This document shows, piece by piece, positions 3,028 to 22,071 of a stretch of DNA of 64,000 nt (position 1 is the first letter of the stretch; every line of letters starts with the position of its first letter). The stretch lies in NCBI GenBank assembly GCA_964234715.1, contig OZ174277.1; one strand, written 5' to 3'. Both the position numbers and the translations under genes were made by a program. The DNA comes from Podarcis melisellensis (lineage: Eukaryota). The notes under the pieces were generated by a model. It had not been told where the DNA came from. It saw only the letters and a list, made by a program, of their open reading frames with translations, and made no database searches.

Positions 3028-3078
3028 CTAACTCAGGTTTCAGTTCAGTTGGTAAGCTTAATTTTCTAGACATCTTTG
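3028..3078 (-). CDS. STXBP5: STXBP5 exon 22 (51 nt, skipped in the s-isoform): AKMSRKLSLPTELKPEL
   Basis: TTTTTCAG acceptor, GTAAGT donor, phase 1-1. Its 17 aa equal the m- versus s-tomosyn difference. Confidence 0.94.
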
Positions 3079-4129
3079 CTGAAAAATAACGTATAGTTTT
3101 ATAATAAAGCTAGAATGATCACATTTTAAAGAGTTTATGAAACTAAGAATTTAAGCTGTTGGTTTCCAAAATAAGAAATCATATACAACAGTTGTAAGCA
3201 AGGAAGGTATGCGCATTTACACATATATTTGTAACAGGTTTTAGTGACAAGTGTGCAGTCAGAGTATGGCAGTGTACCTTCTTTGGAGTTATGAACAGTT
3301 ATGAACATTAGTAATTAAAATTCTCAGAATCTCTGATGTCTTTATTGTAGCGCACTGTAAGTCATTATTTTGTATGATTTCCCTGGCACTAAATGGATTT
3401 AACAATTGAGTCAAGTTTACTTAAGCCTCTTTCCAACCACCTCCCCCAAACAATGGAATACTAACACTACAAAAAGAAAACCGCTGAACCACCAAAAAAT
3501 GATAAATATTAGAAAAATTCACAGAATTACACTGTAAAGTTAAAGACCACAAGAGTGGCTGTGGCTACTGGGAGACAAATTTGTATAGAAAATAAGTTCA
3601 TGAACTATGTTCCTGTGGAAGGACTCTTTTCTCCACTGATGAGGCCAAGTTAGCCAGAACCACCATTGGCAGAGGGCAACTCCATCAAGCCCCTACCAGC
3701 AAGGAATCTAACTGCTGTCAAACAGCACTGTTCAACAGAGGGAAGAACCATGTGGAAGAAGCATCCCTGACCCAATTAGGGCACCGTTGCTCCTCTAGTT
3801 GGGCGGGGACAGTGTGCAGGTGCTTCCACCCTATCCCATTGTCAAGGCAGAGACAAACAGAACCTGAAGCAGTCTGGTCCTCTGCTCTAGAATACATCTA
3901 CATGTGGAAGCCAATCCTGCTGAGAATGCAAACCACAAGATATTTGTAAGCTGTCTTGACATATGCAAACCACTTTAAGATTTTTTTTGTTGAAAAGCAG
4001 GATATAAATGTTCTAAATAAATAAAACAAGGTAATACTATGCTGCAAGTAAACTGGACAGAAAAGTGAGAAGGTGATGGAACAGTCAAAGAACATCCTGT
4101 ACTAGTTGATACCTAAACTCCAAATATAG

Positions 4130-10816: not shown

Positions 10817-10882
10817 CTGAGGTGGGTGACTTGCAACGATCCTCTTGTACAGCTGTACCTTCATTAATATCACAAAGACCTG
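10817..10882 (-). CDS. STXBP5: STXBP5 exon 19 (66 nt): AGLCDINEGTAVQEDRCKSPTS
   Basis: TTTTACAG|CAG tandem acceptor, GTAATG donor, phase 1-1. Confidence 0.94.
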
Positions 10883-11890
10883 CTGTAAAATACAAAGAAC
10901 ACAACAGGTTTCAACAGCTGTGGACCATTTCTAATTCTTGACACAAACATGACACATAAGGTATTTTTGTGCCCACTGGGGAAACAATCAAATCCGATAC
11001 TTAATTATATTTTTAACTAAGCGTTTTGACAAACGTGTTTTGCTGTTCAAAGTATCAGTGTTTCTTCTTTGGGGAACAGGATGATTATGAAGATTCAGGG
11101 AAAAGGGGAGTTGGTATAGATGTGCATGAAAGCCTTTTTTCAATGTGATTTTTCTATGTAATATATGTGATTAATGCAAAATTAATGGAAAATTACCTGT
11201 ATTGTAAACAGGTATATTACAAAGAAAGGTAACCAAGTTGAATATAAGAATGAACATGTAAGGACAAATAGATTACATTTAAAAACCACCATAGACCATA
11301 AAAGCAAGCTAGAATTAGTAACATTTAACATGTTTAAGTATTTGCCTATCACTGTCGTCAAAACAGATCAAATTTTGAAGAAAGGCCTAAAAATACATAC
11401 TTCAAATATATTGATCTATTTGATAACCTGTGCCCTTCTAGGCCCAAGAAACCACTAATTTCAGAAAACACCATGGTGGTAAAAAATCCAGGACTGTGGT
11501 GGTTGCTTGGAACTCTTGCTCAATCAAAGTGATAGTCAACATGTGATTTTGGCATCTAGACCATTGATAAGGATAAAGAAAGCACTGTATCCAATACAAA
11601 ACCGAAGTAGCAACAACAGGCATCACTACAGATGACGAAATGCTTGGGCCGCTTTGGAAGGAGATGCTGTTATGAAAGCTGTTGAAGTGTAAAGATGACA
11701 CTGAAAGGCAGAAGTACAAAGCCTCACAAAGCCTCATGTCAATCTGTCGTTTGTTATCTTATAGTTCTAGGTTTCATCTAGGTCCATGGGCTTTGCAATA
11801 AACAAGGTTGTCCATAATGTTGCTTGCTAGGCACTGAAGAGCTCTTGATTTTCTTTGTAAAATCACAGGAGTGGAGGCTTTCTTAACACA

Positions 11891-13240: not shown

Positions 13241-14399
13241 CAATTACATCTTTGTAGTTCAGACATGTCTGCACTGGCACCCCAAGAACAGTTAAGATCA
13301 CTTTTACTTGAATGAAACGTACAACATGTATAATATTGTAACATAATTTAACTATACAGTGAATTCTTAATGAGTGCCTGGCTTTAAGTCCAGCACAGCA
13401 GGAGACACGCCTAAGCCTCTTTTGCAAAGTTCACATTTTGAATTTTGCCATTTAGGGAGGGGATGCTTTAAAATTCACCCACACTTATTGTGTAGAAGTA
13501 TTTGCAGAAAATAACTTCTAGGCAGTATCTGAGCTCAGGAGAACCCACCACAAGAAAGATGCATCCTGGTCACTAGGAAAAAAGGAAGGATAAACTTCGA
13601 AGACTCCAGGGACTACTAGCAAATAAGACAAGCAGGAAAAGTGCACTAAATGGAAAGGAGAAACAGAAGGCTTTTCCAGCTGGATAAATGGGTCTTTATA
13701 ACAAGTTTTAGGTTTGTTTTAAATTGATTTGTTTTTGTGTTTTTAACCATTTTAAATTATTTATATGTAAATCACCTTGAGACAGTGGTTTAGAAGGTGA
13801 TTAATAAATTAACTGTAATACCAATACTAATATTGTCTGGTGTCCATACAACACACTCAACAATCACAGCTCTGACTTCACTCGCTGGCTAAAAAGCACT
13901 GACAGAGGCAGCCAGGCTAGCTCATTTCACAGAAATTGCTTAGAAGGGTACCTGTATATCTTTGCTTCATAACTTTCTTTCCAGGAGGGTTAGAGATTTA
14001 CTTTTTTATTAAAAATAAAAAGGAAAGTTCAGAGTCTTGGTCCTTTGTCCAAGGGCACCAATGAAGGGCTTTGTGGACACCATTGCACACATTTGTGCAC
14101 ATTTGTGGGCACTACTGCACATTTGTGACTTGTATTCTATTATCTACTAATGCCACTTCTTTTACTGTTGCTTGCAAAATAGATGAAGGATGTAATCTGG
14201 ATCTTATTGTACTCAATATTCCATATTGATAGTATCTCAGGTAACAATCTATAATTATATTAATATAGAATTAATCTCTGCCGATATGTTAGTGAAAGAA
14301 GCTGAAAAGTAAAAGCTATGGTAAAATATTCAGGGTGATGAATGCATATAACCTAATCAACTGGATGTTAAAACACTTTATTCTTATGAGATGACTTAC

Positions 14400-14483
14400 T
14401 TATATAAGAGGTGCGAAGTTTTTTCACAGACTCTGAATATAAGTTAGAGAGGCCACACATGCAAGAAGCCACAGCCAGCATGC
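14400..14483 (-). CDS. STXBP5: Putative alternative cassette exon 18a (84 nt): GMLAVASCMCGLSNLYSESVKKLRTSYI
   Basis: Pyrimidine tract GTTTTTGTCTTTCCTTTCTCATTGCTTCAATAAG, consensus GTAAGT donor, phase 1-1, no stop codons; resembles the STXBP5L segment FCMRGLSNFYPDLTKRIRTSYQ (recalled). Confidence 0.8.
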
Positions 14484-16649
14484 CTTATTGAAGCAATGAG
14501 AAAGGAAAGACAAAAACACCAACACAGTATATTTGGAGAAAGAAAAAAAATCTGCAGAAAAACTTTAAGATCCAAGAAAACAATGTATTTGTGGGAAATT
14601 GTTAGACAGCAACTGAAATACAACAAATCATGCATGTGCCAGAATTCACACAGTATAATATAATTTACTTGTTGTCTTACATAATATTTATAAAATTTCC
14701 CATTAATACTACTAACAATTTAACGACAAAACAAACCTATCCCTACTCAGCTGTTTAACTGTTTCATTTAAGAGAATATATTACTAATATTATAAAATAG
14801 CCAGACTTATTTGTACTTATTCTTTTAATAAAACTACAATTATTTAACCATCTTTAATATGGAACTACCAGGAAAGGTAGGTAGGAAGAGCCAGAATTGC
14901 TGCTTATTCAACAGCCATAAATAGTTTTACAACGAAATGGTAATTCATGGAATATTGCAGTTTATATCTGAAACATTTGCAGTGTTCCATGTGGCTATTG
15001 TAGTAATTCATAATTGCATATAAGTACACAAAAAGTTCCATTGGTTACTACCAGAAGAACAGATCTTCAGTGCCTGATGAATGTTATTGGTTGAATATTG
15101 GTTCCATATCTGATGGTCAAAGGCAGGAACAGAACTTGTGAGAAGTAGGCAGTTCTGACATCCAGACAGCAAAGAGGGTGCCATGGATATACTGCCGTGA
15201 TCAGGATCTCCAACGGCCACAGACGTCAAGGCTAGAAGGAAGCTAAAAGGACCACTGTGGCTTTTCTTCCCTGATTTTATGAAGGACCCAGGTAAGAACA
15301 GAAATCAAGGAATGGTGTACAATAAGCCCAGGCCCAAGGAGACAGCAGTTTACTGAACCTCTACTAATAGGCTCTAAACTATAGTATTAATTAACTATGA
15401 AACATATTTTTATACTACAAGGAGGCAGAGTCTCTCTCTGCCTTCAGGATCTTTTTTAAAAGTAGAAGGAAATGGTATGGACTTTGTAAAGGAATTTGGT
15501 TCAACAAGAACAGATGCCCCCTTAAATGGTGCTGAGGTAGGTTCTGCAGGAGGGCAATGAAGTCTAAGGCCATTGCAGAGCAAAGGCACATAGTGGGAGT
15601 CATGAGAGATAAAACCCATCAGGCCGAGGCAATGGTGAAGGCAAATGTTGTTAAGGGTCTAGAATGTCCACAGATATAATAAATGGATTCATCCCTTTCC
15701 ATGGATAAGGGCTGCTTATGAGATGCTTAGTGCTTGTTTATGAGGCAAATGCCGAGCAAAGGTCTTACATTTAGAGGAAGAAGGAAAAGCTGCCTTAGCA
15801 GGCACTTTAAGTTTATTCAAAGGCTGAGTTTGGGCAGGAGGCGTGGCTATTGCCACCAGAGAGCACACTGACTGCCATCCCTACTCTTCAGAAAGCCAGA
15901 ATGCTGGGGCATGGATACATAGCACACACCAAACCAGAAGGTGCAGTGGTCCAAAACAGCTAAGAAGAATCGCCGAGGTTCAAATACCAACAAACCTGCC
16001 TCCATCCTCCACTGAAGCAGTTACTGGTGAAATCAGGAGAGAGAAAAAAGGCAAGAAGGCAAGGCAAGGGGGTTCTATTTATGGGAGAGATGCAGGCAGC
16101 AAAGAATGTAGAAAACAGCCAAGAAAGATGGGCTCAGGTGACAAGAGACAGGCTGAGAGAAGAAAGTGCTGGAGCAGTCATGAGGAGGAGAGAAGGTTAG
16201 GAGTGACAACCATACTGCCCTGGTATACTGAAGGGAGAGTGGGATGGCTTAGAAACAGTTAAGAGGAAGGCAAACACTGGAACAAAGAAGAAAAAGTGGA
16301 ATTTAGAAAACCTGAGAAGAGAAAGAACAGGAGCTCAAAAGCAATGTGACTACTTTGATGAAGGCAAGAATCAACTAGGAGCTGCCTACTTCCCACAAAT
16401 TCTGTCCCCACCTTCAACCACCAGGTGGAGCCAATACTCAACCAACGACCTTCACAGGAAGTGTGCCACATTAAACATGGCATTTGAAGCAGAGACATAT
16501 ATCCCCAAACACTTGGGGGAAGAAGCATGTTCTCACTACACTTTTACTTCTTTCACATTCTTCCTCCTGTGGAAGAATGGTGTACTGTGGTTACTGCATA
16601 CTATAAGGTCCCAGGGCTGGTTACACTAAAAGGTCCCAAGGTAATAGAA

Positions 16650-17790
16650 AATAAAGCATCCAAAAAAGATTAAAACAAACTATGCTCACAACAGGTGTCT
16701 TTAAGCATATGACAAAAAGCTGTATAATGAAGGTGACAGTGATATATTTCTGTGGGGAGGGTATTCCACACAGAGAATGCTCTCATCTCAGGTCACATCC
16801 CAATATCTCTAAGGACAGTGGAACTACCAACCTCGCTGATTTTAACACCCAAGAAGGCCTGTAGGAAAGGAGGTGGTCTTTCAGATATTTGGGAACTAAG
16901 TGAGCACCATGAACTGAGCCCTGAAACAAACCAGCAACCAGTGCAGCTCTTTTAGAACAGGGCTTATGTGAGTTCTAAAGGGAGCCCCAGGCAGTAGTCT
17001 GGCTGCTGGAGGTTACCAGAGCATGGAGTACTGTGGCCAAGTTGTCTCTGTGCAAATTAGACTGTAACGGGTGAAGCATCCAGAGCTGGAAAAAGGCATG
17101 CCTAGTTACCAAGGCCAACTGAGCCTCCAATGACAAGGCTGAATTCAGTAGCATCCCCAAGCTATGGACATGCTACTTCCAGGGAAGTACAACCCCAACC
17201 ATGACAGGTCCCCACACCCCAGAATCAAGAACCTGGGACACATAATACTGCTTTCTTTTCAGGATTCTGATTCAGTTTATTGGCTCACACACAGCCCATC
17301 ACCACCTCCAAGCATCAGTCTAACATCTTGACTACCTCTCCCAATTCATATGCAACAGAGAAACAGAACTGGGTATCATCTGCATATTGGTGACACCAAA
17401 TTTCCTGATGGCAGTTCCCAGTGGCTTCATATAGATGTTCCAGCGACAAAATAGAATACTGCAGTACACCACAGGACAACTCTCATGGCACATAACAGTA
17501 GCCTCCCATAACTACTTTCTGGAAACAGCCCTGGATAAAGGATTGGAACTACTGAAGTACAGTGCCCCCAACCCCCACCTCCCTGAGATGATCCAGAAGG
17601 ACAGTGGGAGGTCAAGGAGAATGAGCTGGCTTGCACTCTTCTCACCTCTCTCCTGACAAATCTCATCAACCAGGATGTCCAAGGAGGCTTCAGTATCATA
17701 ACTGGGCCTGAAGCAGGACTAAAATGGATCTAAGCAAAGAGTTTTTTCCAAGCATGTCTAAAGCTGTACTGCCACAACCCTCTCAAGCGT
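16650..17790 (-). mobile_element. Degenerate L2/CR1-clade LINE fragment (reverse transcriptase region)
   Basis: Minus strand encodes CHQYADDTQFCFS (YADD motif) near 17365-17397; similar to 12345-13240. Confidence 0.8.
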
Positions 17791-18417
17791 TGTCCAAAAA
17801 TTAGTTATTTTGTACTGGGCAATAGTGATTTAACATTTCTGGGACAAAAAATGTCTTCCTAAGAAGGAGCCACACCACCATGTCCTTCCAGGCAGGTGGT
17901 CAGTCCCTCTCCTCAAGTGAAGCATTAATCACTCATTGCAAACCCAGCTAACCATCTACGGCTAGCTCTCAGAAGCCGAGGTGGGCAAGCATCAAAGGGC
18001 AGCAGGTTGGCTGCACTTCTTCAAACAGCTTGTCCACATCTTCAGGTATGAAGCAACTCTAAAATTTTCTGTTCATATGCACTTCCTCCTCTGAGAATTT
18101 TAGGCTTGTGGTTTGCTGAATTTATGTGATTGCTTCCATGTGCCAATACACACCTTAACAGATCAAATACGGCATGCTGAAATAATTGTGTCAAAAAATG
18201 AAGGGGTTAAGTGCTGAGTGGTTCTGTGAAGCAGTTAGTTCAGAATAAATTAACAGGGCATTTATGATAACAGGGTGTGATAGCAGAAAGGAAGACGAAA
18301 AGTAAATCTCAAACAGGGAAAGGCAAGACAATGGAAGATGGTTGATGTGAACACATAAACCTTGGTAAAGAATAACACTTTTTGTATAAAAAAGTAATGA
18401 AGTAGAATAATATATCT

Positions 18418-18891
18418 TTGAAGGTGACTCAGAAAGTACAACTAATACAGAATGTGGCAGCTAGACTGGCGACTGGGAGTGGCCGCTGGAACCATGTAAC
18501 ACTGGTCCTAAAGGATCTTCACTGGCTCCCAGTACATTTCCAAGCACAGTTCAAAGTACTGGCACTGGCCTTTAAAGCCTTAAGCAGCCTCAGCCCCGTA
18601 TACCTGAAAGAGCATCTCCATCCCCATCACTCAGCCCAGTCACAGAGGTCCTCCTCAGAGGGTCTTCTGGCAGCTCCTTCACTGTGAGAAGTAAAGTTAC
18701 AGGGAACCAGGCAGAGGGCCTTCTAGGCAGTGGCACCCTCCCTGTGGAATGTGGCCCCCCCATGTCAAGGAAATAAACAACTACACAACTTTTAGAAGGC
18801 AGCCCTGTATTGGGAAATGTTTAATGTTTGACATTTTATTATGATTTTATATGTTCTGTAAGCTGCCCACAGTGGCTGGGGGAAATGGGGT
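18418..18891 (+). mobile_element. L2 LINE 3' end, 5'-truncated
   Basis: ORF 18418..18687 contains KVQLIQNVAARL...LKDLHWLPVHFQAQFKVL, a typical L2 ORF2 C-terminus; ends ctgcccacagtggctgggg followed by a microsatellite tail. Confidence 0.85.
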
Positions 18892-18931
18892 GAAGAAGAA
18901 GAAGAAGAAGAAGAAGAAGAAGAAGAAGAAG

Positions 18932-18960
<29 letters not shown>
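18892..18960. repeat. (GAA)23 microsatellite
   Basis: 69 nt of uninterrupted GAA. Confidence 0.97.
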
Positions 18961-18963
<3 letters not shown>

Positions 18964-19218
18964 GTAGTATGCTTATTATATATGCTAAATTTGGCAGTCT
19001 GGAATACTCTTAAAATGAAGACTGTTTGCCTACCATAATCAGATGATGTTTTCTAAAAAGAAGCCCCTACAGAATATTCTCAACATATAAACCTTTTGGT
19101 TTGTGCAAGTTACTTTCAAAGAAAAAGCTAATCGCATGCACTCCTAATCAGCTTGCGGTCCGGTAAGTAGAAGACCAATACAAAAATTTATCAGCAAGTA
19201 TCAAGTGTATGACCTTAC

Positions 19219-19370
19219 CTCCAGATGGTTGTCTGCTTTTACGTGGAGATCGGGGTTCCCTCCTATAAGGATCATTAGAACCATACAATTCAACGGTGCC
19301 AAGGTTTAAAAGTGTGGTCTTTTGGATGTAATCAACCATTGCGATCCCATTACAATTGCCAAAAACTACT
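19219..19370 (-). CDS. STXBP5: STXBP5 exon 18 (152 nt): VVFGNCNGIAMVDYIQKTTLLNLGTVELYGSNDPYRREPRSPRKSRQPSG
   Basis: CTTTCAG acceptor, GTAAGG donor, phase 2-1. Confidence 0.96.
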
Positions 19371-20287
19371 CTGAAAGAAAATTTATTAGAAAGAATATGA
19401 TGGCAATGAATGATTGATATCCAAATATATGCTTATGTTAAGTACAACATTTTACTTTCCATTTTTAGGAATTAGTTGAACTGATTATTTTTCAAAATCT
19501 ATAATATATTCTTATATAACATTTAGAAATGAAAATTTGCATGAAAAACTATTCAAAGAACAATTTATTTTAGTAGTAGTTGTTGAGAATAAAACCAATA
19601 GACTATTGCCTTACTAAATAGCAAACCTCCACCTGACATAGAATGATTACTGTCCACTGCTTACTCAAGGGTAACTGTTTTGTTGCAGTGCGGGAAGAAG
19701 CTAATAGCTGCCTTGTTAGTTTGTCCTTGACATGCATTTGTGTTTGGCATGGTTTTACATTAATATTTATTTCTTATAAAACAGGTTTAAGTAAATAGGC
19801 AGTAAGAACAATACATAATAAGATGCAACTCTAAACAACAAGCAAGATAAAAACAACAGAATGAGCTGGAAACACCAACAGGAGACTTTTGATTCTGAAC
19901 TGTTGCGATTAACCAAAAAAGCATTTTCACATCTATATAATAGGAGCTGAGACAATCCACCATCTGGCTGCAGAAGAATACCAAAATATAATCTTCCCCA
20001 TTCCTGGCTGCTACACTTGAGATTTGCCTCATCACCACTGATGACTCTGTACTTCTACTTTTTACAAAACGTCTTACACCTCCATGCCTCACCCAGAGGT
20101 TTCATATGCTGGTCTGATTGTCTTAGCCACATCATCTAACTGTCTGCTATACAATTACCCAAATGAATACCCCACTGTACATCCAACGTTCAATTACTTC
20201 ATTCTCACCATCTTGTTTTAATGTCCGACAATTGACTAATTTACTTGTTACAGCAGCACATTATTGCATTCTCCCATATTCTTTCTG

Positions 20288-20343: not shown

Positions 20344-20748
20344 AAAAAAGCCTCTTCACAAAACGGCTGGTAGTCTAAAAATATACAAGACATTCAAGAA
20401 ATCAGAGATGGCACAGAAGATTGTGTTCTACGCTGAGAACCATTTGTCAACTTTTCTGAAAGTGCTGTGTACACATCTAACAGCAGAAGCTATCTTCCCC
20501 ATGTAATATACGAAGATGGTACAACATTATTGTAATGAAAGGGAACCTTGGACAAAGACTGAAATGTGTTTGCGGCTGAATACCACAATAAATGAGAAGG
20601 CCCTTTAAGTACCTTTTTACTGAAAACATGGAAACAAGTAGCATATCAAAACAACATGAATCCAGTAGTTTAGCAGTAACGTCATATTCTTTCTGCAACA
20701 GGACAATGGGATTTAAGGAAGAGAAAGCACAGCACCAAATATACTTAC

Positions 20749-20874
20749 AAGCCATAGGCAGAGTTGATTGCAAGGCTTGTTATTTGCTGAGGTGGTTCTC
20801 CACTCACCCATACTAACTGGATAACCAGCTCAACCTGGTAGCCTGGAGACTGCTTGAGGGAAGAGTTTTTAACT
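20749..20874 (-). CDS. STXBP5: STXBP5 exon 17 (126 nt): VKNSSLKQSPGYQVELVIQLVWVSGEPPQQITSLAINSAYGL
   Basis: TTGCAG acceptor, GTAAGT donor, phase 2-2. Confidence 0.96.
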
Positions 20875-22071
20875 CTGCAATATACAGGAAAGGTAGACAA
20901 CATTTATCCTTGTGGAAGTCTGCCAATAAATTTTACTAGAGTGGGAATATTTCATGACTGATTGTATTTCTTACTGCAAGTTAGTACAGCTTCAAATGCT
21001 TACTCTGGAACAGATTCATATGATATGGGGGAGACTTTTTAATGTAAGTGGCCGTGTTCTGATAGTGAGAAAGATCACATGCAAGCACTGGAGAGCACAT
21101 TTTCCCACCCCGCCACCCTGGTCCCGGGTGTACATAAATTGCTTAATCAGTCACATTTTAACATATTTTCCGATCCTGGCATGTAAATGATGGTTTGCAC
21201 ACAGCAGAGCTTGCTTAGTTAAGATGAAATGGCAAACTATAATTTGCTGAAGTGGTTGCAAAATTAAGCATTATATCATAAGGACTCACAATACTTATTA
21301 TACATTTATTTATTTTTCTTTAATTTAAAGCATTTATAAAGCATTTATGGAAACAGAAATTCAGTAATAACAGAGACCAATCTTATGCGTCAGGGACAGC
21401 CAGGACAAAATGGTATGTCTAAGTGTCTAAAGCAACTGATAGATGATGCTTCACACATGGCAGAGGAAAGAGCATTTCACAGTGCAATTAGTTCCGCTCT
21501 CTGCCAAGTCTCAATAAAGTAGAATTTGGTGGCGTGTCATGACTGGTGACCTAGACTTGAGAGTTGTTAACTTACCTAAATTAATCTCTTGAGTCCATGG
21601 CTCAACTGAAATTTGAACCAGGAATCTGCAGGCTCATAACTTATTCTCTATCTCAAATATGAAGGAATAGGAAACAGTACAGGAAAGTGAGATAAGGCAG
21701 GAGATTCTAAGTTAGATGTGTAGTTGGGGGCATTTGGCATCCGGTTCTCTCTGGAGGACTGAGAATGGGCATGCTGTTTTTTAAGAAAAGCTGCAGTTGC
21801 TATATATCAAACTTTGGCAAATACAGCTATTGAAACACATAGGTAGTTTCATAGGCTCCTGTAAGCAATATATAATTACTTTGTACATTGATACAAGCTC
21901 AATACATGTGTCTTCTATTTGCGCACCTTTGTAAAGCATACACTAGGAGGAGGTATGAGTAACCATATCCCAAAGCAGCACATGTCAAAAGCCAAAAGTT
22001 TTTTCTACAATAAGATTAAGCAGTCTATGAAGGTAAGATACAGTATTTAGAAATACTAGCCTTACACTTAC

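Follow-up and report, generated by a model that had tools for sequence, protein, structure and literature searches.

Tomosyn-1, encoded by STXBP5, restrains SNARE-mediated exocytosis in neurons, platelets and beta cells. The literature recognizes three isoforms of tomosyn-1 (s, m and b) and four of tomosyn-2, its STXBP5L paralogue (these three and xb; PMC3188574). The hypervariable linker of tomosyn-1 is the site of PKA phosphorylation and SUMOylation, which fall on exons other than the one considered here (PMC3188574). A Stxbp5l exon regulated by SLM2/T-STAR and Sam68, likewise an alternative exon of a tomosyn hypervariable region, is 171 nt long (PMC5397175).

The DNA analyzed here, referred to as the window, is a 64,000-nt stretch from Podarcis melisellensis. 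Comparison with STXBP5 proteins (tblastn) gave 18 collinear segments on the minus strand, which placed the window in the STXBP5 gene. Between exons 18 and 19 an 84-nt segment (14400..14483, minus strand) runs from phase 1 to phase 1 and codes for (G)MLAVASCMCGLSNLYSESVKKLRTSYI(T). It is very probably a genuine, alternatively spliced STXBP5 cassette, orthologous to a known cassette and paralogous to one in STXBP5L, with minor or tissue-restricted use.

On the minus strand the intron ends in ...ctttcctttctcattgcttcaatAAG, the exon runs from GCATGCTG to CTTATATAA, and GTAAGTcat follows. The 3′ splice site region (14484..14530, minus strand) is composed of a pyrimidine-rich tract and a non-consensus AAG acceptor, which precedes the exon as ...caatAAG. 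An A at acceptor position -3 is rare. The 5′ splice site, GTAAGTCA, spans 14392..14399 (minus strand), with GTAAGT at 14399-14394, and the last base of the exon is A, not G.

The peptide was read in frame +2 of the cassette. An in-frame TAA is found immediately 5′ of the final G of the acceptor, and translation running past the donor passes nine further sense codons and then stops. Re-reading of the sequence confirmed what the first-pass annotation had given for the exon, namely its coordinates and letters, the open phase 1, the AAG acceptor, the GTAAGT donor and an internal CAG at 14435-14433. Its statement that this frame was absent from the ORF track needs a correction: a mechanical list with a cut-off of 25 aa contained 14368..14481(-) as an ORF of 37 aa.

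The upstream constitutive exon 18 (19219..19370, minus strand) ends with ...RKSRQPSG plus one base (g) and is followed by the donor gtaagg. It was 90-92% identical to its top two protein matches, one of which has an STXBP5-type sequence. The downstream exon 19, AGLCDINEGTAVQEDRCKSPTS (10817..10882, minus strand), opens with 'ca ggt ctt tgt' and is preceded by ttttacag. Both exons adjoin the cassette in phase 1, and inclusion preserves the frame. The product would read RQPSG-G-MLAV...SYI-T-GLCD, the junction Ala being replaced by G, 27 residues and T.

Exon 19 has a tandem CAG/CAG acceptor (10882 or 10879), located at window 10879-10884 on the minus strand. Without the cassette it gives RQPSG-AGLCD or RQPSG-GLCD. 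With the cassette it gives ...SYI-TGLCD or ...SY.-SLCD (also ...SYL-SLCD in RefSeq isoforms). The outcomes annotated in other species, among the fetched proteins, were 16 TGLCD versus 25 SLCD.

Two other features of the gene were recorded. The intron between exon 18 and the cassette contains a perfect (GAA)23 microsatellite (window 18892-18961). An STXBP5 exon of 46 residues (window 20739-20876, minus strand) matches proteins of Varanus, a parrot and a dolphin, and is missing from an NCBI protein, P0306. Either this exon too is alternative, or the annotations differ.

The first-pass annotation had given a similar peptide for STXBP5L, and correctly so: squirrel (Sciurus) STXBP5L, MBZ3886426.1, carries DNFCMRGLSNFYPDLTKRIRTSYQ, flanked by ...PRKNKQIIA (homologous to exon 18) and SLTELND...RCKSPTS (homologous to exon 19). 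In view of its length, this 24-residue segment is putatively the one reported to separate xb- from b-tomosyn-2 (Groffen et al. 2005). In a single BLASTP comparison the window cassette aligned significantly to the squirrel protein, and only at this segment (12/20 identical, E 6e-7). The earlier alignment by eye had given 12/22.

The two cassettes occupy homologous positions, between the ...SPRK... exon and the ...RCKSPTS exon. They have a common core, CM.GLSN.Y....K..RTSY, and both are optional in the hypervariable linker. On the other hand, the STXBP5L cassette has 24 residues versus 28 in STXBP5, has neither a hydrophobic N-terminal stretch (MLAVAS) nor the second Cys, and shows DLTKR where STXBP5 has ESVKK. 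The CxC motif pointed out earlier is present in the window cassette but is not a general feature, as only the first Cys is kept in teleost STXBP5 and in STXBP5L.

Judged by this alignment and by its position, the window cassette and the 24-residue STXBP5L cassette are paralogues. Both genes have the cassette at the same junction, and in STXBP5 it extends from cartilaginous fishes to mammals. This indicated that the exon predates the STXBP5/STXBP5L duplication, in agreement with the previous proposal. The Stxbp5l exon regulated by SLM2/T-STAR and Sam68 was also considered as a counterpart and was rejected, because it is a 171-nt exon and not the 72-nt cassette (PMC5397175). It is not a paralogue of the cassette, and its regulation is therefore not transferable.

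An exhaustive protein search was performed with exon 18 as the query, and the matches were then screened locally with the cassette peptide and its two junction residues (G...T); exons were searched singly throughout. Four matches had a cassette-like segment directly after exon 18: squirrel STXBP5L, a Coilia protein, toothfish STXBP5 and bichir STXBP5. A word search with 40 residues of bichir STXBP5, spanning the exon-18 end and the cassette, found 88 catalogued proteins with the cassette directly after RQPSG, and every named one was STXBP5 or 5-like.

Cassette-bearing species included rays (Mobula, Hypanus and Hemitrygon), non-teleost ray-finned fishes (Polypterus, Acipenser, Polyodon and Lepisosteus) and many teleosts. 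Among the tetrapods they included two amphibians (Xenopus laevis and Leptodactylus), the reptile Varanus komodoensis, about 20 species of birds, and mammals (rat, with isoform X11 XP_063131071.1, gerbil, goat, dog, a bat, a bear and dolphins, e.g. XP_067557939.1). The consensus of 49 distinct cassettes was g..l.v.sCMcgLS.lYSESVKKLrsSy, with the core C-M-x-G-L-S-x-L-Y-S-E-S-V-K-K-L-R-x-S kept across jawed vertebrates.

The window cassette was identical to the common bird form at 27/28 residues and to those of gar and monitor lizard at 26/28. Taken over birds, gar, bichir and Varanus, 25-27 of the 28 residues were identical, at the same junction. Comparison with rat isoform X11 gave an E value of 4e-12 (BLASTP). 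Two further NCBI proteins (P0305 and P0306) carry the cassette with differences from the window at three cassette residues, and were therefore not treated as the window's own products.

The suggestion that the exon might already be present in automated gene predictions was borne out by dozens of RefSeq 'isoform X' entries and Ensembl/UniProt models. Some Ensembl-derived models run through the cassette donor into the intron. These are no evidence of splicing, and not every catalogued model is transcript-backed. A 33-nt short form using the internal CAG had also been proposed, and no 'PSGESVK' junction was found among about 350 proteins.

Splicing of the cassette was seen in a fish. The Logan transcript contig SRR11587724_7618 (5771 nt) codes for an uninterrupted STXBP5 of 1138 aa with the cassette in it, so it must be a spliced transcript. 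Many RefSeq isoforms also join the cassette correctly to exon 19.

Five short bird ORFs found by word search were rejected as evidence of splicing, because they read through both introns and are thus genomic. Their contigs, unspliced through both introns, provided bird genomic DNA. The cassette exon of the window was 92-94% identical to these contigs in nucleotide sequence. The identity fell to 78-80% in the 50 nt upstream, 60-65% in the 50 nt downstream, and about 40% beyond 100 nt. Five codons differed between the window and birds, four of them by synonymous changes and one by a replacement.

The bird contigs keep the acceptor as AAG/G and the donor as A/GTAAGTCA. The AAG acceptor and the GTAAGTCA donor were present in four bird-type contigs and in carp, paddlefish and toothfish, so that the splice sites are conserved in the genomic DNA of other species. 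The paddlefish cassette (L010:7189-7266) is 78 nt long; a 6-nt in-frame deletion removes Ser-Glu of LYSESV, and Cys replaces the conserved Arg.

RNA of Podarcis melisellensis was searched with a query made of the exon and some 57 nt of sequence to either side of it. RNA or probable-RNA runs contained 13-75% of the sampled words, and raw-read RNA runs with the same species label were also found. Four runs, three of contigs and one of raw reads, were mapped to window:10750-14600. The contig runs had been selected for containing the cassette stretch. The upstream part of the intron (region 13900-19400) was avoided owing to (GAA)23, so that the junction 19219>14483 would be visible only as a loose end at 14483.

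The first-pass annotation had pointed to reads across 19219>14483 (exon 18 to the cassette) and 14400>10882/10879 (the cassette to exon 19). Over window:10750-14600, no joint involving the cassette and no loose end at 14483 was found in the four runs, from unspecified tissues. The power of this check was low, as about 12% of the raw run was read, junction reads numbered 7, and contigs drop rare variants. The pieces that covered the cassette (14376-14526, 14461-14600 and 14236-14423) matched the genome straight through the splice sites, at a depth of 2-5.4. They are unspliced pre-mRNA fragments.

The summed contig depth over the exon-19 bin was 5-23 by run, with single contigs at 41.5-44.7 in runs X1 and X5. 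The 5′ end of exon 19 was joined to the end of exon 18, in all the informative runs (7 reads of run X22 and contigs of X1 and X5); the exon-18 end was recognized, in reverse complement, as a loose end at the 5′ end of exon 19. At its 3′ end exon 19 continued into the AKMSRKLSLP exon, AKMSRKLSLPTELKPEL (3029..3079, minus strand), by an m-tomosyn-type junction. The sampled transcripts are m-tomosyn-like, and skipping of the cassette is the form seen in them. The direct joining of exon 19 to exon 18 means that the cassette is optional. We infer that it is also included in some tissue of Podarcis melisellensis.

Two side observations came from the same runs. The exons at 8849-8790 and 8695-8642 are bypassed where exon 19 joins 3079..3029. 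In two runs, 31 nt of the intron (13668-13698) recurred inside contigs of 735 and 1169 nt, with unrelated flanks and at a depth of 12-13; a repeat fragment transcribed at another locus is the probable source.

The lack of inclusion junctions in the four runs, and the low-depth, unspliced reads over the exon, would also be produced by a relic, that is, an ancestral exon used in other vertebrates that has dropped out of splicing in this lineage and survives as intron sequence. Without use, such an exon should drift. In the window, however, the open frame, the AAG acceptor, the pyrimidine tract and the GTAAGTCA donor are all intact, the changes relative to birds are the single replacement and four synonymous ones, 27/28 residues remain as in the common bird cassette, and the flanking intron is still conserved. 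We consider a relic improbable.

The level of conservation at synonymous sites was high. Between the window cassette and a teleost mRNA, 63/84 nt were identical. Where the amino acid was the same, the codon was also identical in 17 of 18 cases in the cassette, versus 16 of 36 in exon 18. Alternative exons under regulation typically show constraint of this kind at synonymous sites. This suggests that the near-frozen synonymous sites reflect splicing-regulatory RNA elements atop the coding function.

A hypothetical RNA hairpin was predicted at 14398..14444 (minus strand), whose stem would take in the six final bases of the exon and the donor GU. In the window sequence its energy was -15.2 kcal/mol, with a z of -6.1 and 0/200 shuffles. 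It was kept in 3/4 bird contigs (identical by descent) and weakened in one bird variant. The stem was absent in carp, paddlefish and toothfish, and covariation gave no support. A stem-loop that occludes the 5′ splice site, of the MAPT exon 10 or SMN2 TSL2 type, was considered and rejected on these grounds. Its absence in fishes also means that the hairpin cannot explain the synonymous constraint from fish to reptile. The fold of the whole exon was not special (z -0.35).

Synonymous sites that have hardly changed between a genome of reptile grade and a teleost, together with a stable local hairpin over the donor, might suggest that the segment is conserved for a non-coding role, as an intronic splicing regulator, an RNA structure or an enhancer, and that its open frame is incidental. 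This is very unlikely. The segment is spliced into fish mRNA and into many RefSeq isoforms with correct exon 19 junctions, the changes between lineages are mostly synonymous or conservative, and the donor hairpin is absent in fishes. RNA-level constraint atop coding is, moreover, normal for alternative exons, so that it is no alternative to a coding cassette.

The splice signals were compared with chance over the 8336-nt intron between exons 18 and 19, using a crude splice-site matrix of our own approximate frequencies. By this matrix the intron held 393 open, frame-preserving AG..GT intervals. Two other candidates (17707/17701..17579, with one common donor) equaled or beat the cassette on both sites. 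On splice signals and open frame alone, the cassette is not above chance. The case thus rests on homology and conservation.

These similar-scoring candidates in the same intron would allow the cassette to be an AG..GT interval that is open by chance and resembles STXBP5L by coincidence, a reading that 25-27/28 identities to the cassettes of bichir, gar, monitor lizard and birds at this junction, the E value with rat isoform X11 and the conserved splice sites effectively refute.

Inclusion of the coding cassette would insert 28 residues between ...RQPSG and GLCD..., where the hypervariable linker begins after the second WD40 propeller. Basal inclusion may be kept low by the AAG acceptor, which is weak and conserved, with the exon being switched on in particular cells. 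From the peptide, the Cys and the basic Ser/Thr motif might modulate tomosyn, e.g. through phosphorylation or acylation. Candidate features for acylation or phosphorylation are the invariant Cys-Met, the LS.LYSESVKKL core and the basic R-(T/S)-S end. A full-length AlphaFold2 model of a cassette-containing bird isoform had a mean pLDDT of 30.5, and no structural reading was possible.

A deeply conserved optional insert of 28 residues at the start of the linker, with a core common to tomosyn-2, is a plausible regulatory module. A fuller proposal, to which we give slightly less than even weight, is that the 'xb-like' cassette is a fourth independent module of tomosyn-1, retained over more than 400 million years with nearly unchanged synonymous sites and experimentally undescribed, whose Cys/basic Ser/Thr core, common to tomosyn-2, would act as a regulatory switch in a restricted cell type.

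The small exons that make up the classical s, m and b forms of tomosyn-1 are used combinatorially in the same hypervariable region as the cassette. None of these forms contains the cassette, and functional studies with s-, m- or b-tomosyn-1 cDNAs leave it out. The junction ...SPTS-AKMSRKLSLP in the RNA runs is of the m type, as in classical m-tomosyn-1. In gene models the cassette is combined with s-, m- and b-type downstream exons. This indicated an independent fourth variable module. The first-pass annotation had suggested an xb-type isoform of tomosyn-1 beyond the classical three. Its central inference of a conserved extra cassette is supported, and the cassette is not one fixed 'xb' isoform.

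No description of the STXBP5 cassette was found in searchable papers. On the other hand, it is already present in the public gene models of many vertebrates, including mammals, and is therefore not new as a feature. It appears to be known at the database level and uncharacterized in searchable papers.

The closest known counterparts are the annotated STXBP5 cassettes of RefSeq/Ensembl predicted isoforms, e.g. those of rat (isoform X11, XP_063131071.1), Pseudorca (isoform X8, XP_067557939.1), Cuculus canorus (X7), Xenopus laevis (X2/X4), Lepisosteus (X6/X23) and Varanus (KAF7254555.1). These lie at the same junction as the window copy (after ...RQPSG and before GLCD/SLCD), have 28 codons in most cases, are 77-96% identical to it in peptide sequence, and have the AAG acceptor and the GTAAGTCA donor wherever genomic DNA was readable. 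The mammalian cassettes (e.g. dog and bat) are more diverged. At position 4 the window copy has A where the common bird cassette has T, the one difference between the two, and gar and monitor lizard have A here as well. By sequence, then, it is another orthologue of the annotated STXBP5 cassette with nothing essential different, one more copy of an exon that annotation pipelines place in many species.
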